64,000 nt of DNA from Pavona decussata. Taxonomy: Eukaryota. The notes beneath the pieces are model-generated. The model ran no database searches, was not told where the DNA came from, and was given only the letters and a program-made list of their open reading frames with translations. Below, piece after piece: positions 47,401-51,897 of the stretch. The stretch covers positions 124,001-188,000 of the forward strand of contig CDRNST010000054.1 in NCBI GenBank assembly GCA_977016875.1. Reading direction: 5' to 3'. Both the position numbers and the translations under genes were made by a program. Positions within the stretch are counted from its first letter, which is position 1; each line of letters begins with the position of its first letter.

Positions 47401-47769
47401 TGCTCTTGTGGGTCTTGTGTTGAAGACGAGGAGTTGAAGTGGGAAGGAACACCATACAAGACAAAGTGCCCACTAACATTTTTTTTACACGCTTTATTTA
47501 AATACCCAAATACACTTAGGTTGCTTACACTTATAAATTACTTACACTTATACAGTATTTGAATTTCACAAAGTACTTTTCTGTTAAGTTAAAAGAGAAA
47601 AAAAAAAGACAACTAAGTAATCGAGAAAAAGAAAAGAAGAGACGAAAAAAATTATTAAGATAACAAAAGAAGTTAAACCAAAAAACGACAAAATCGAGCC
47701 TATGCATTACCTTACATATGAGAGTTAAGAAAAAAATGCATCACATCATTCATTTTGATTGAGAGCAGA

Positions 47770-48725
47770 AATTCCATTTAAGCACATTTTTCTAATTCCA
47801 TTGAATAGCAAGTTTGTTTACAAGTTCATCTAAAGACAATTCTTTCTGAAGGTGTTTAGAGGAGTAGATATATTGTTTGACCAAGATGATGAGCAAATCT
47901 AGCCTGCATCTTTCGGGGTCCGAGAGCACATCAGTTACATGATGTATATCACGAAAGACAATTTGTTCATTCGAGAGTGTTATTGTAGTAGCTTGGCACT
48001 GGTTGAACCATGATATAATTTGTGAGTAAAGTTTTACAGACTCCCTGCAATCAATAAAGGTGTGTTCTATTGAATCAGCACTAGAGCAATATATACATTT
48101 ATCGTTATCTGCTAAATGAAATAGTTTGAGTTCTCTCCTTGTTACAGTTATTCTATGCAGAAAACGAAAACAAAATTGACGGAGTTTGTTATCCTTAGTA
48201 AAGCGGTATATAGCTTAAAACTTATTTGACCAATCAACAAATTTTTCTGGGAATTAAACCTGCCTCTTTTTAACTCCACTTGGAACAATGGAGCCATGAT
48301 TATTGAACAACTGGTAATAATTTTTACAGCGCGCTTCAGCAAGATCAAAAAAAGTTTTATTTAACGGAACGGATGCGGAAGTCGAAGAGAGATCAGCTGC
48401 AGGTATAAAAGTTTGTGCTGCTCTCCTTTTCAACTCGGATGGAATGGCTGAAATTAGTTGAAAGTAGTGCAAATAATTTGTGGTAATGTTAAATTTGTTG
48501 CTAAACTCTTCATATGGTAAAAACTTGCCATTTGTATTTAGCACATCCTTTACTGATACAACTCCGCTATCAAACCATGACTTCCAAAACAAGGTAGCAT
48601 TGTCTATGGTTATCGACTTGTTATTCCAAAGAATGAATTCCCCATTTGGAAGGATGTTACTTGTTATCTTGAGATCTTGAAAGTACTGAAGAAGTTCTCG
48701 ATAAAAAAGAGGAAGACCTGTAAAT
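47770..48725 (-). pseudogene. Tx1 ORF2 C-terminal part (zf-RVT region)
   Basis: LPLFYRELLQYFQ...ILWNNKSI..W..SGVVSVKD...YFQLISAIP...KCIYCSSADSIEHTFIDC. Confidence 0.85.
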
Positions 48726-48814
48726 AGACTGGGACGAGAGGCCGTCCGAGAAGGACATGTATTTGTAAGCTCTGTAGTCTGGGAGGCCAAAAAAGGATAA
48801 ACAAAGACTATGAT

Positions 48815-49729
48815 ATGCCAAAAGATGAGAAAACTAGGGCTAGAAGAAAAAGAGATGACCTGAGCAGTGCCAGCAGTGCCAATTCCCAAACATCGCCGGA
48901 CCCGAAGCAAGAAAACATCTTTGAAAATTACGACGACGCCAAGATGGCGGACGGCTGTGGAAAGGAAACAACTCCTTCACTCAAAACCTTGTGGGCAACA
49001 ATCATGCGAATAGATGAAAACACCAAAAAGCTAGTAGATGACCATAAAATCCTCCAAAACAATTATGAAGCACCCCAGCAAAGTCTCGAATTTACGCAAG
49101 CAAAAATGGATGAATTAAAGACATGCAACGACATGCTTAGAGCTAAAGTCAATGAGCTGGAAACCAAGATGGCACGGACGGAAGAACAACATGTGGTCGA
49201 AGTAAACGAAATGCAGAAAGAGCAAGCTACAATGGAAAACAAGCTTCAGGAACTGGCCTTGCAACATGACAAGCTGGAACAATACACTAGAACAGTTAAC
49301 CTAGTAATATATGGTATTCCTGAGAGGAAAGACGAAGACCTTGTTAATGTTGTTCTTGACCTCGCCGAACATTTGGATGTTGATTTGCTACCAGAAGATA
49401 TCGAAATCACCCACCGTCTGAATAAAAATAAGGAAAAATCGAGGCCAATTATCATTCGATTTGCGAATTATTGCAGTAAGGATCAAATGTACAGAAGTCG
49501 TCTAAAGCTTCGTAAGTTGAATGTACAAAGTATGGGTGCCGAGAAGATTTTCATTAATGAAAATTTGACCTCGAGGAGGGCGGCTTTATTCAAGAAAGCT
49601 CGCGACAAGAGCCACTCCAATAAAGGCTGGCGAGTATGGACAATGCACGGCAAGATATTTATTAAAAAAAGCCCTAACAGCAACAACGCGATTAGAATTA
49701 AAACGATAGAGGATTTGGAAAAACTGTAA
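48815..49729 (+). CDS. LINE ORF1 (coiled coil, RRM-like and C-terminal domain), intact frame
   Basis: 304 aa; LEQYTR..NLVIYGIPE...RPIIIRF...IFINENLT...VWT..GKIFIK. Confidence 0.88.
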   Translation: MPKDEKTRARRKRDDLSSASSANSQTSPDPKQENIFENYDDAKMADGCGKETTPSLKTLWATIMRIDENTKKLVDDHKILQNNYEAPQQSLEFTQAKMDELKTCNDMLRAKVNELETKMARTEEQHVVEVNEMQKEQATMENKLQELALQHDKLEQYTRTVNLVIYGIPERKDEDLVNVVLDLAEHLDVDLLPEDIEITHRLNKNKEKSRPIIIRFANYCSKDQMYRSRLKLRKLNVQSMGAEKIFINENLTSRRAALFKKARDKSHSNKGWRVWTMHGKIFIKKSPNSNNAIRIKTIEDLEKL

Positions 49730-49879
49730 ACATATGGTTAGAAAAGTTGTATTAGCTTTTTCCTTCTCTCTTGTCATATTGTTATTCAATTCAAATTACT
49801 AGCAAAACTATTCCTTTTTTCCTGGATTTGCGCTTCCCAGACATGATACAGTTTGATTGTCCAATTTTTTCATATAATA

Positions 49880-51220
49880 ATGGAAGGTAATCTAAAAGTT
49901 ATCTCGCTAAATATGCGAGGTACAAGAAATCCAAACAAAAGGAGAGCAATCTTTTGCTATTTAAAACAGCAAAAAGCCCATATTTTTTGTTTACAAGAGA
50001 CCTATTCACAACCGGATTATGAAAAAATATGATCTGCGAATTACAGGGATGCTGTTGGCAATCTTATGAGTGAACTGAATCTTATTGACATCTATCAAAA
50101 ATTGCACCCCAAAACAAGATCTTTACCCTACGAATCTAAAACTATTAATTTAAAATCGAGAATAGCTTTTATCTTGGTATCCCGCTCGATCTCCATAGAA
50201 GTCCAAAATGCTGAGATTTGAATGTCAGTTGCACCTGATCATAAGGCGACTTTCTTAAAGATTAACATAAGAAGTGAACTTAAGAGAGGCCCGGCTCGTG
50301 GAAATTCAATAACTCTCTCCTAGAAGATGATGATTTCATTCTATTATCCTCAAATACATGAGAAATACGCCGACGTTAAGGATAAACAATTATTGTGGGA
50401 ATTAATCAAAATGGAAATACGCATGAAAACAATTAGATATTCTAAAGAAAAAAGATACAAACTTAAAAAACGTGAATTAACACTTCAAAAGGAATTACAA
50501 GATCTTGACGATAAAATTTGCAAAACGGATTTTGAAACCTTAGACCAAAATGTTCTTGTGGAGTACGAAGCCGCCAAAGAAGAATTGAAAAAGATATATG
50601 AAAATAGAGGAAAGGAAGCTATTTTTAGATCAAAAGCAAAATGGCTTGAACAGGGAGAAAAACCGACAAAATATTTTTTTAACTTGGAGAAGACGAACTA
50701 TGACAAGGTGAAATTAGAGGATGGAGATACGATAACATCCAAAACAGATTGAGAAAGAACTTGAAAACTTTTATAGCAATATGTATACATCCAAAAATAA
50801 TCTTTATAGCGAACTTCAAGGTGAAAACGAGAGCTTTGAGTCATTTGTCGAGGGTATTGAAATCCCTCCATTGAATACTGAGGAATGAGATTCATTAGAA
50901 CACGATTTTACATATGAGGAATTAAAAGAAGCGGTGAGCTCTTTCTCGGACAACAAAACTCCAGGTGAAAATGGATTCACTAAAGAATTTTATGAGTCCT
51001 TTTACGATCTCATTTGGAGAGATCTGCTAAATTCTTATAATGCAGCCTTTCAAAGCGGGTCCCCATCTATTTCTCAAGGGAGAGGAATAATAACTTTAAT
51101 ACCAAAAGCTGACGGAGACCTGACTGAACTCTCTAATTGGCGTCCAATATCTTTACTTAATATCGATTTTAAAATTTTGACTAAAGCTTTGGCAAAAAGA
51201 ATAGAAAAATACCTTCCAAA
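49880..51220 (+). pseudogene. Tx1 ORF2 N-terminal part (APE endonuclease to start of RT)
   Basis: SLNMRG...IFCLQETYS...PDHK...WELIK...WLEQGEKPTKYFFNLEK...KTPGENG...NWRPISLLNIDFKIL; stops and a deletion. Confidence 0.9.
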
Positions 51221-51897
51221 TGCCCACTAACATGTGAATTTCACTGGTTGGCCTTCAGGATTAAGTGCTAGAAAAGAGCAGAGGAGGCTGCATCAGTAAT
51301 TCACCCTGAATTAGGAAGAGGGCACAGTTTTGCCACAATTCAGGGCAAAATATTGCTTACTTGGTTAACAATTAAATATTACCTGTTCAGACATCATATG
51401 CTGCACACATTCCCACACAAAACCCATCAAATAAAATCCAGGCAAAGTTATTGCGAACAAACAGCCAGTCAGATTTCGCACAAATCTTGTGTCTTGTTGG
51501 AAACATCTTATAATTTCCACATACATATTCTTGAATGGCCTGAGTGAACTCTACCCAAGCATCCAACATTTACTAGCATCCTCTGACTCCTCTGCCATGC
51601 ACATTTTCTCTCAGACAGTTGCCCAGACCTTTTACGGATGCCTACACAACACCGGGCAGTCTCTCTTTTGTATGTTTGTGATCCTTGACATTTATATGAC
51701 AACCATGATTTGTATCTCTTTTCTGGATTACATTTTCTATGGGTCTCTGTTAGCAGTGGGTTTAACAATTTCGCCTCATTTGCACCTTCCTGTCACTGAT
51801 TAACAGATGATACTCGAAAAGAGCACATGAAATGAAAAGTTATTCCCATTTTCAAGCGCTTTAAAGCTTTTACATTTAATATTAACATCATGCACTA

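Follow-up and report, generated by a model that had tools for sequence, protein, structure and literature searches.

How did two opposed pieces of a LINE come to lie head to head within one TSD in the genome of a stony coral? The question is raised by a locus in the window, by which we mean the whole 64,000-nt stretch of Pavona decussata DNA that was analysed, and by a first-pass annotation that had read the geometry of this locus as twin priming. 5' inversion has so far been treated as a near-peculiarity of mammalian L1, and twin priming with 5' inversion of mammalian LINE-1 was reportedly described by Ostertag and Kazazian in 2001. We consider one retrotransposition event of a twin-primed LINE of the L1 superfamily to be the best explanation of the locus, with a probability of about 0.8.

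Architecture of the composite insertion

An exact 13-bp direct repeat, TGCCCACTAACAT, bounds one composite LINE insertion as its TSD, and this single TSD encloses both opposite arms, just as the first-pass annotation had described (Table 1). Element positions follow the numbering of C395, a full-length natural copy of 5518 nt that was stitched from the overlapping loci of one contig and used as reference in place of a family consensus. The direct arm contains the C-terminal portion of ORF2, the 3' UTR, an AATAAA motif and an A7 tail (T7 on the forward strand, 47480-47486); the polyadenylated minus-strand segment that had been noticed is present, with a tail of only 7-8 nt. The inverted arm, made up of three blocks, carries the 5' UTR, ORF1, an endonuclease remnant and the N-terminus of the RT, and breaks off some 40 residues past the start of the RT domain. 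The earlier description of this arm, as running from the element 5' end through ORF1 and the endonuclease into early RT, was right in its content but had overlooked two deletions private to this copy, one of 315 nt and one of 327 nt.

In element coordinates, the inverted arm (1-3174) is upstream of the direct arm (4267-5518) and it is position 3174 that adjoins the TSD. The 1092 nt between them, which correspond to the RT core and the thumb region, are absent on the C395 scale, in agreement with the RT core having been reported as missing. The head-to-head join that had been placed at about 48728 does exist, but its exact position has to be corrected, as the arms end at 48721 and 48727 and are separated by five filler bases. 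Ordinary full-length 5' junctions in the family have extra bases too, namely AAAGGGG for C395 and GATG for C32. A chimeric ORF spanning the arm-arm junction was looked up and is not on record.

Table 1. Features of the composite insertion (positions in the window)
Feature	Position	Strand	Remarks
Left TSD copy, TGCCCACTAACAT	47467..47479		host paralogues have a single 13-mer
Direct (non-inverted) 3' arm	47480..48721	-	element positions 4267-5518; 94.9% identity to C395
Block with 9-mer CCTTCCAAA, copy R2, then TG	48643..48661	-	inside direct arm; element positions 4327-4345; proposed annealing site
Filler AAATA, 5 bases	48722..48726		head-to-head junction; matches neither arm
Inverted arm	48727..51220	+	element positions 1-1134, 1450-1630 and 1958-3174; three blocks, 94-96% identity to C395
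ORF1, 304 aa	48815..49729	+	probable coiled coil, then C-terminal domain; Pfam Baculo_FP_2nd 7e-6
Junction of 315-nt private deletion	49860..49862	+	element positions 1135-1449, between ORFs
Junction of 327-nt private in-frame deletion	50037..50041	+	element positions 1631-1957, inside endonuclease; GAAT microhomology
9-mer CCTTCCAAA, copy R1	51212..51220	+	element positions 3166-3174; last element bases before TSD; apparent start of inverted cDNA
Right TSD copy, TGCCCACTAACAT	51221..51233		exact repeat of left copy

Whether the two halves derive from one LINE family can be answered from their sequences, both of which resemble C395 closely (Table 1) and carry markers of the same subfamily, A. 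The inverted arm starts (GACTGGGACG...) at the very base shared by the three other complete 5' ends, the only ones present genome-wide, and the GACTGGG 5' terminus, a marker of subfamily A, is found in only 4 copies genome-wide. At the other extremity, the direct arm bears the A-type 3' end marker CCTAAGTG..., of the CCTAAG type, and these 5' and 3' markers are linked in C395 and C32.

When the insert and one copy of the TSD are removed, the two flanks align colinearly to paralogous copies of the host repeat on C148 and C6, each of which reads straight across a single copy of the 13-mer and thus indicates one insertion event. Removal also restores the host reading frame, as had been claimed, though a stop is encountered only 12 codons past the site. 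The host sequence is itself repetitive, with at least three paralogues; a Pfam search with six flanking ORFs of this host repeat gave no match, and a search based on a language model pointed to PF20700 Mutator clusters, so that the name Kolobok given to the target in the first-pass annotation is at most tentative. A look-up of ORF1 led to one further record of the locus, the sole one besides this contig: ENA ERZ25073751, which shows 100% identity across 6.9 kb and probably represents the same assembly.

The LINE family and its affinity

Judged by its sequence, ORF2 is L1-like and the element belongs to the L1 superfamily. It is closest to human L1 ORF2p (E 2.7e-116, residues 8-889), an R2 reference reaching only 1e-31, and the L1-group identity proposed for the element is thereby upheld. 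The Pfam matches of ORF2 are Exo_endo_phos (N-terminal APE-type endonuclease) and RVT_1, with zf-RVT in relatives; ORF1 matches human L1 ORF1p weakly (E 0.026) and has coiled-coil-type Pfam matches too. More than 60 copies of the family are present genome-wide, with TSDs of 9-15 bp, mostly 12-14 bp, those of the inverted copies being 10-13 bp. Within the L1/Tx1 group named by the first-pass annotation, Tx1 is a candidate clade only, and searches for a clade name returned none. Many Tx1 members are site-specific. The insertion sites of the coral family are diverse, with AT at the start of the TSD as their only common feature, and so give no sign of site specificity. Among named proteins, the nearest are those of Oculina patagonica.

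Other inverted copies in the genome

Three 5'-inverted copies of the family were found among at least 62 3' ends, of which about 37 were inspected closely. The two that lie elsewhere, C225 and C103, are both flanked by TSDs (ATCAAGTGAAAAA and ATACACCTCGT, respectively). According to element positions, C225 has an inverted segment 3313-3769 and a direct segment 3785-5517, with 15 nt between the two cDNAs, and C103 an inverted segment 3319-5000 and a direct segment 5006-5518, with a gap of 5 nt; at the internal priming site, each has 2 nt of microhomology. Both have the textbook look of twin priming, and their nearly abutting cDNA ends argue for the earlier suggestion that an element of this type can twin-prime in the coral lineage. 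A stretch farther upstream on the contig of the window (C54:84700-89500) was compared as well and shows no similarity to the family, its ORF1 or its ORF2.

Proposed order of events and the internal priming site

Under twin priming, the endonuclease would nick the forward strand after ...CTAACAT and the resulting 3' end would prime on the poly(A) tail, giving a cDNA that starts from the left TSD copy and would reach element position 4267. A second nick in the other strand, 13 nt away, would leave a 13-nt 3' overhang, the complement of the right TSD copy, from which a second cDNA would be primed, with the same RNA species as its template; this cDNA would run to the capped 5' end and gain a few untemplated bases there. 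The 3' ends of both cDNAs would finally be joined head to head, so that the 5' part comes to lie in inverted orientation, with the upstream TSD on one side and the truncated 3' part on the other.

Some observations on the window copy count against twin priming. At the literal junction, the overhang has no complementarity to the element (0 nt; element ATTAA versus TGCCC), and the 1092-nt gap exceeds the gaps of C225 and C103. A large gap between cDNAs need not disqualify this reading, because only 46% of human L1 inversions have their cDNA ends within 20 bp (PMC12016303). As for microhomology at the priming site, which the first-pass annotation had suggested checking, it is lacking at the literal junction but reaches 8 + 2 nt at element positions 4327-4345. 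This block contains the sole further occurrence in the element of the 9-mer with which the inverted arm ends (copies R1 and R2, Table 1), and R2 has the final 8 nt of the TSD ahead of it and, behind it, TG, with which the TSD begins, an arrangement with a joint chance of about 2e-4, judged post hoc. The bases ahead of R2 are ACTAACAT in the family versus AGTAACAT in the window copy.

We propose the R2 block as the true annealing site of the 13-nt overhang. With its 8 + 2 complementary nucleotides, the overhang may first have annealed there and copied 9 nt, after which the nascent cDNA would have jumped to the identical 9-mer R1; such a jump would create the apparent 1092-nt gap, and with priming at R2 the two cDNAs would overlap by 77 nt. 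This refinement was noticed post hoc and has a single copy as its basis. A wider homology between target site and element was looked for and rejected, the local alignment score being 14 versus a shuffle mean of 14.2, with only the 8-mer beside R2 standing out. A general rule of overhang docking finds no support: in C225, a similar match of 6 nt falls short of significance (p about 0.07), and in C103 there is no match.

Private deletions of the inverted arm

The 315-nt stretch lost from the window copy is kept in all other copies covering that region. Both private deletions may represent additional template jumps of the second cDNA; splicing was discarded as their source, since neither has GT-AG boundaries and a GAAT repeat marks the site of the second. 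Microhomology at private deletion joints ranges from 0 to 5 nt, and amounts to 9 nt at the putative jump from R2 to R1. When deletions in the family are counted per arm type, 4 fall in 5.3 kb of inverted sequence versus 5 in 96.6 kb, both being small numbers. To our knowledge, a concentration of deletions in inverted LINE arms has never been reported. As the window copy is about 5% diverged, its internal deletions could also postdate the insertion.

Alternative explanations

The zero microhomology at the literal junction of element and TSD, the 5-nt filler between the arms and the many internal joints across the family that are poor in microhomology would also suit a single integration in which the target overhang had no part in priming the inverted arm. 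In that case, a second cDNA, or the cDNA of a 3'-truncated RNA fragment ending near element position 3174, would have been captured, and end joining or end-to-end template jumping would have linked it with the overhang and with the first cDNA. We regard this as unlikely: not a base is missing from the TSD, as extension of the overhang itself would predict, the block adjoining R2, with its complementarity to the overhang, points to annealing, and the microhomology and abutting cDNA ends of C225 and C103 are typical of true internal priming. We think it very unlikely that a normal full-length insertion on the minus strand was followed by inversion of its 5' 3.2 kb and a 1.1-kb deletion. This would require a breakpoint exactly between the TSD and the 5' end of the element, a chance of about 1 in several thousand, and C225 and C103 have the same TSD-bounded geometry with different breakpoints, even if a divergence of about 5% gives age enough for secondary rearrangement and other deletions are present in the copy. 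An 11-nt inverted repeat (I11, 48643-48653 and 51212-51222) speaks in favour of a later inversion too, but an inversion between the arms of this repeat was rejected because the predicted breakpoints differ from those observed.

The element is a repeat of more than 60 copies, and an assembly artefact, either a repeat-induced mis-join or a flipped contig segment, could in principle be blamed for the structure. We find this scarcely credible: a mis-join would neither reproduce an exact 13-bp TSD around the composite nor place its breakpoint precisely at the family's 5' terminus, both flanks align colinearly to the paralogous sequences, and a divergence of about 5% between the arms and all other copies means that neither arm was taken from elsewhere in the genome. 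LINEs are found nested in DNA rich in repeats, and two independent insertions might by chance stand head to head, but we give this virtually no credence: target-primed reverse transcription (TPRT) cannot yield a 3'-truncated copy that lacks poly(A) and has a complete 5' end, and the sole TSD encloses both arms, with no separate TSD for either. The reading of the geometry as twin priming is supported by the single TSD, by arms of the same subfamily and by the exact 5' terminus, and these rivals fare poorly.

Comparison with known systems and significance

As in twin priming of mammalian L1, a single TSD of 10-15 bp encloses two oppositely oriented arms of the same element in the coral copies, of which the direct arm is primed on poly(A) and the inverted arm internally, the latter with its element-3'-most end at the upstream TSD; microhomologies are of 0-2 nt, and in two of the three copies the cDNA ends are 5-15 nt apart. 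By contrast with the mammalian system, the host is a stony coral and the element, although of the L1 superfamily, is only distantly related to mammalian L1, the coral poly(A) tails are short, and the inverted cDNA of the window copy reaches the very 5' end (an element span of 3.2 kb) and leaves the 1092-nt gap. Inverted copies make up 18-22% of human L1 insertions (PMC12016303, PMC11484939), and the frequency observed in the coral family is lower, with 3 found among the 3' ends given above. Compared with LINE copies that are internally deleted or template-switched through RT jumping at microhomology, the coral copies are alike in having joints with 0-5 nt of microhomology but differ in that their deletions appear to be concentrated in inverted arms.

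The 5' junctions of human L1 and of the zebrafish elements ZfL2-1 and Nimb-2_DR were studied by experiment by Yamaguchi et al. (2014), who tied 5' inversion to long TSDs of 10-20 bp, that is, to long 3' overhangs, and obtained inversions only for human L1 in human cells and for a single insertion of Nimb-2_DR in chicken cells, from which they concluded that inversion depends on both the host and the element (PMC4245944). This fits the view of the first-pass annotation that 5' inversion is poorly documented outside mammals. The coral family, with TSDs of 9-15 bp and of 10-13 bp in its inverted copies, agrees with the link to long TSDs, and differs from those experiments in that inversion is seen in the germline record of a non-mammalian host with its native element.

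It is conceivable, and we put it forward only tentatively, that twin priming is ancestral to L1-type ORF2 proteins that cut with a stagger of at least 10 nt, and independent of mammalian host factors. The coral copies would then record the behaviour of the second reverse transcription, which may start at 8 + 2 nt of complementarity between overhang and RNA, jump between identical 9-mers after only 9 nt, and make far more internal jumps than the run primed on poly(A), deletions being about 14-fold enriched in inverted arms. If true, this excess of template jumps would be a natural readout of the processivity of second priming.

For annotation, the finding has a practical side. A twin-priming filter is applied to human L1 in GraffiTE (PMC11484939), and annotation of invertebrate transposable elements without such a filter would split copies like these into two opposed fragments. 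For the biology of the family, the three copies of a native L1-like element that are inverted and flanked by TSDs in a cnidarian imply that the mechanism operates far outside mammals, and they agree with the view that what enables it is a long 3' overhang, reflected in TSDs of 10-15 nt.

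Structure of the window copy

Using a natural full-length copy of the LINE on contig C395 as reference in place of a consensus (three overlapping loci stitched together, 5518 nt from the 5' end to the tail start), we mapped both halves of the insertion in the window (C54:124001-188000) to one family. As the first-pass annotation had described, a minus-strand 3' arm and a plus-strand 5' arm meet head to head inside a single exact target-site duplication (TSD), the 13-mer TGCCCACTAACAT. Between the arms lie five bases that match nothing. The RT core is indeed absent between the arms, the 1092 nt missing there corresponding roughly to ORF2 residues 570-933 and taking in most of the RT domain. 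Two further gaps in the plus arm, of 315 nt between the ORFs and 327 nt within the endonuclease, are filled in every other copy that covers these stretches.

Features of the window insertion and related copies (element positions refer to the C395 copy; L-numbers are fetched loci)
Feature	Location	Strand or orientation	Remarks
TSD, left copy	window 47467-47479		TGCCCACTAACAT
Tail	directly after left TSD copy		T7, then reverse complement of AATAAA
LINE 3' arm	window, to 48721	-	
Filler	window 48722-48726		AAATA
LINE 5' arm	window 48727-51220	+	ORF1, shortened endonuclease, RT start
ORF1	window 48815-49729	+	
TSD, right copy	window 51221-51233		TGCCCACTAACAT
Block	element 1-1134	+ in window	95.9% identity to C395
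Block	element 1450-1630	+ in window	93.9% identity to C395
Block	element 1958-3174	+ in window	94.0% identity to C395
Block	element 4267-5518	- in window	94.9% identity to C395
Host repeat	window 46672-47479 and 51234-51290		paralogues include L065, L066
C225 copy (L032)	element 3313-3769	inverted	TSD ATCAAGTGAAAAA both sides; adjoins upstream TSD
C225 copy (L032)	element 3785-5517	direct	followed by poly(A)
C103 copy (L062 and L061)	element 3319-5000	inverted	TSD (A)TACACCTCGT
C103 copy (L062 and L061)	element 5006-5518	direct	followed by poly(A)
GACTGGG 5' termini	C32:119301, C54:172727, C233:1940502, C395:136289		C54 is the window copy

ORF2, read from an open frame in another copy, contains Exo_endo_phos and RVT_1 domains and matches human L1 ORF2p (E 2.7e-116, residues 8-889) far better than the R2 retrotransposon; ORF1 matches human ORF1p weakly, and zf-RVT is found in close relatives. 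All named near relatives are hypothetical proteins from one stony coral, Oculina patagonica (88-90% identity), so that the genome belongs to a scleractinian coral or close kin.

Both flanks, each including the 13-mer, match paralogues of the interrupted host repeat on contigs C148 and C6, where the two matches overlap by exactly 13 bp. Once the insert is taken out, the window is colinear with these paralogues through one 13-mer; judged from this alignment, the composite is one insertion event. Removal of the insert had been said to restore a host reading frame (KCPLT|CEFH): the frame does continue across the join, but in the window copy it meets a stop after 12 codons, at a codon where the C148 paralogue stays open. 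Of this repeat, a putative Kolobok, there are at least three paralogues (88% and about 75% identity). None of its ORFs matched Pfam; a language-model search indicated Mutator-like clusters, as a lead only.

Element ends and subfamilies

The plus arm begins with GACTGGGACG, at the same start base as three other complete 5' ends (C395, C233 and C32), upstream of which the flanks are mutually unrelated; a pattern search found only four complete termini of this type in the 602-Mb genome. Rearrangement has affected three of these four: C32 lost 1.8 kb in one deletion, C233 lost 1.7 and 1.3 kb in two, and in the window copy an inversion is combined with deletions. The one colinear copy, C395, has broken reading frames. 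Between TSD and element, an extra 4-7 bases stand at full-length 5' ends (AAAGGGG in C395, GATG in C32, AAATA in the window); C233 has none, its TSD and 5' end overlapping by up to 3 nt.

Of the family 3' end there are at least 62 occurrences, some of a CCTAAG... type and others of a TATTAG... type. The window 3' arm is of the CCTAAG type, as are C395 and C32; because this 3' end and the GACTGGG 5' end go together in those two copies, the window arms belong, by their terminal sequences, to one subfamily; they have also diverged from other copies to a similar degree. Eight copies, on C227, C129, C71, C18, C271, C333 and C46 (L005-L009, L011, L013) and on C216 (L002), have upstream of element position 1336 a different 5' module, homologous among themselves and not to the ORF1-bearing GACTGGG region. 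These also have the TATTAG-type 3' end, and the family therefore consists of two subfamilies with swapped 5' parts. Some copies share identical flanks and TSDs (C382:202402-207937 and 208705-214240; C71 and C18; C395:202684 with C78:4759941 and 4775435) and were multiplied by segmental duplication or together with a larger repeat; they do not stem from separate retrotransposition events.

Further inverted copies

Mapping the C395 reference onto all fetched loci, with strands cross-checked between searches, revealed two more TSD-flanked inverted copies, on C225 and C103, which brings the total to three; about 37 loci were looked at closely, and the family has at least 62 3' ends. Nothing in C54:84700-89500 (L064) resembled the family, its ORF1 or its ORF2. 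The C225 arms are separated by 15 nt, with 2 nt common to TSD and element; those of C103 are 5 nt apart with a 2-nt microhomology, and its inverted arm has two internal deletions (753 and 105 nt). The inverted cDNAs of these two independent copies stop at element 3313 (L032 about 1084) and 3319 (L061 about 645), at most 6 nt apart in the KAFD motif region of the RT (chance about 0.004 if ends are uniformly spread), a possible hotspot of pausing or breakage. TSDs of the family are 9-15 bp long, in most cases 12-14; AT opens nearly all of them, as read in element orientation at the 3' junctions of about 14 copies including window 47467-47479; this suggests a bottom-strand nick by the endonuclease immediately behind ...AT, in otherwise diverse targets.

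Twin priming as the probable mechanism, and its alternatives

Twin priming, as originally proposed, best accounts for the geometry of the window copy (probability about 0.8), and is supported by the single TSD around both arms together with the two further inverted copies. Inversion of a normal insertion by a later chromosomal event is very improbable, as it requires a breakpoint exactly at the boundary of TSD and 5' end and leaves the C225 and C103 copies unexplained. Mis-assembly is slightly less probable again: apart from the window the locus is on record once, in an identical sequence that probably comes from the same assembly, but an assembly error would not regenerate the TSD to the base, and from every other copy the arms differ by about 5%. 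Nested or independent insertions are hardly credible, given the single TSD and an arm with a complete 5' end yet no 3' end.

Under twin priming, the plus-strand end ...CTAACAT would prime on the poly(A) tail, and the 13-nt overhang of the other strand would prime a second cDNA running to the RNA 5' end. The filler resembles the additional bases seen at 5' junctions of ordinary full-length copies, which fits untemplated addition at the cap. At the literal junction, overhang and element showed no complementarity. The inverted arm closes, next to the TSD, with nine bases, CCTTCCAAA (positions 3166-3174, R1), that recur in the element exactly once, at 4335-4343 (R2), where across the family they are followed by TG, the first two TSD bases, and preceded by ACTAACAT, the last eight; the chance that a recurring 9-mer adjoins the only 8-nt overhang match is about 0.053 x 0.0033 = 2e-4, judged post hoc. 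Because R2 adjoins TSD-matching bases on both sides, we infer from this one copy that the overhang could have annealed at element 4327-4345, about 60-80 nt downstream of the first cDNA end, and that nine bases would be copied before the nascent end shifted 1.2 kb upstream to the identical 9-mer.

Internal deletions of at least 100 nt number four in 5.3 kb of inverted arms versus five in 96.6 kb of direct arms (binomial p 7.5e-4; per arm, Fisher's test p = 0.066), a hint of a tendency to jump in the second reverse transcription; they could also reflect post-insertion decay.

Of 106 papers found to use the term twin priming, the 40 ranked best all concern mammals. Among human L1 insertions 18-22% are inverted, and in inverted ones the cDNA ends lie within 20 bp in only 46% (PMC12016303). 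In the work of Yamaguchi et al. (2014, PMC4245944), 5' inversion was confined to human L1 in human cells and one Nimb-2_DR insert in chicken cells; they tie it to TSDs of 10-20 bp, a long-overhang idea that the coral TSD lengths fit. The coral case therefore takes the known twin-priming mechanism into a cnidarian L1-like family.
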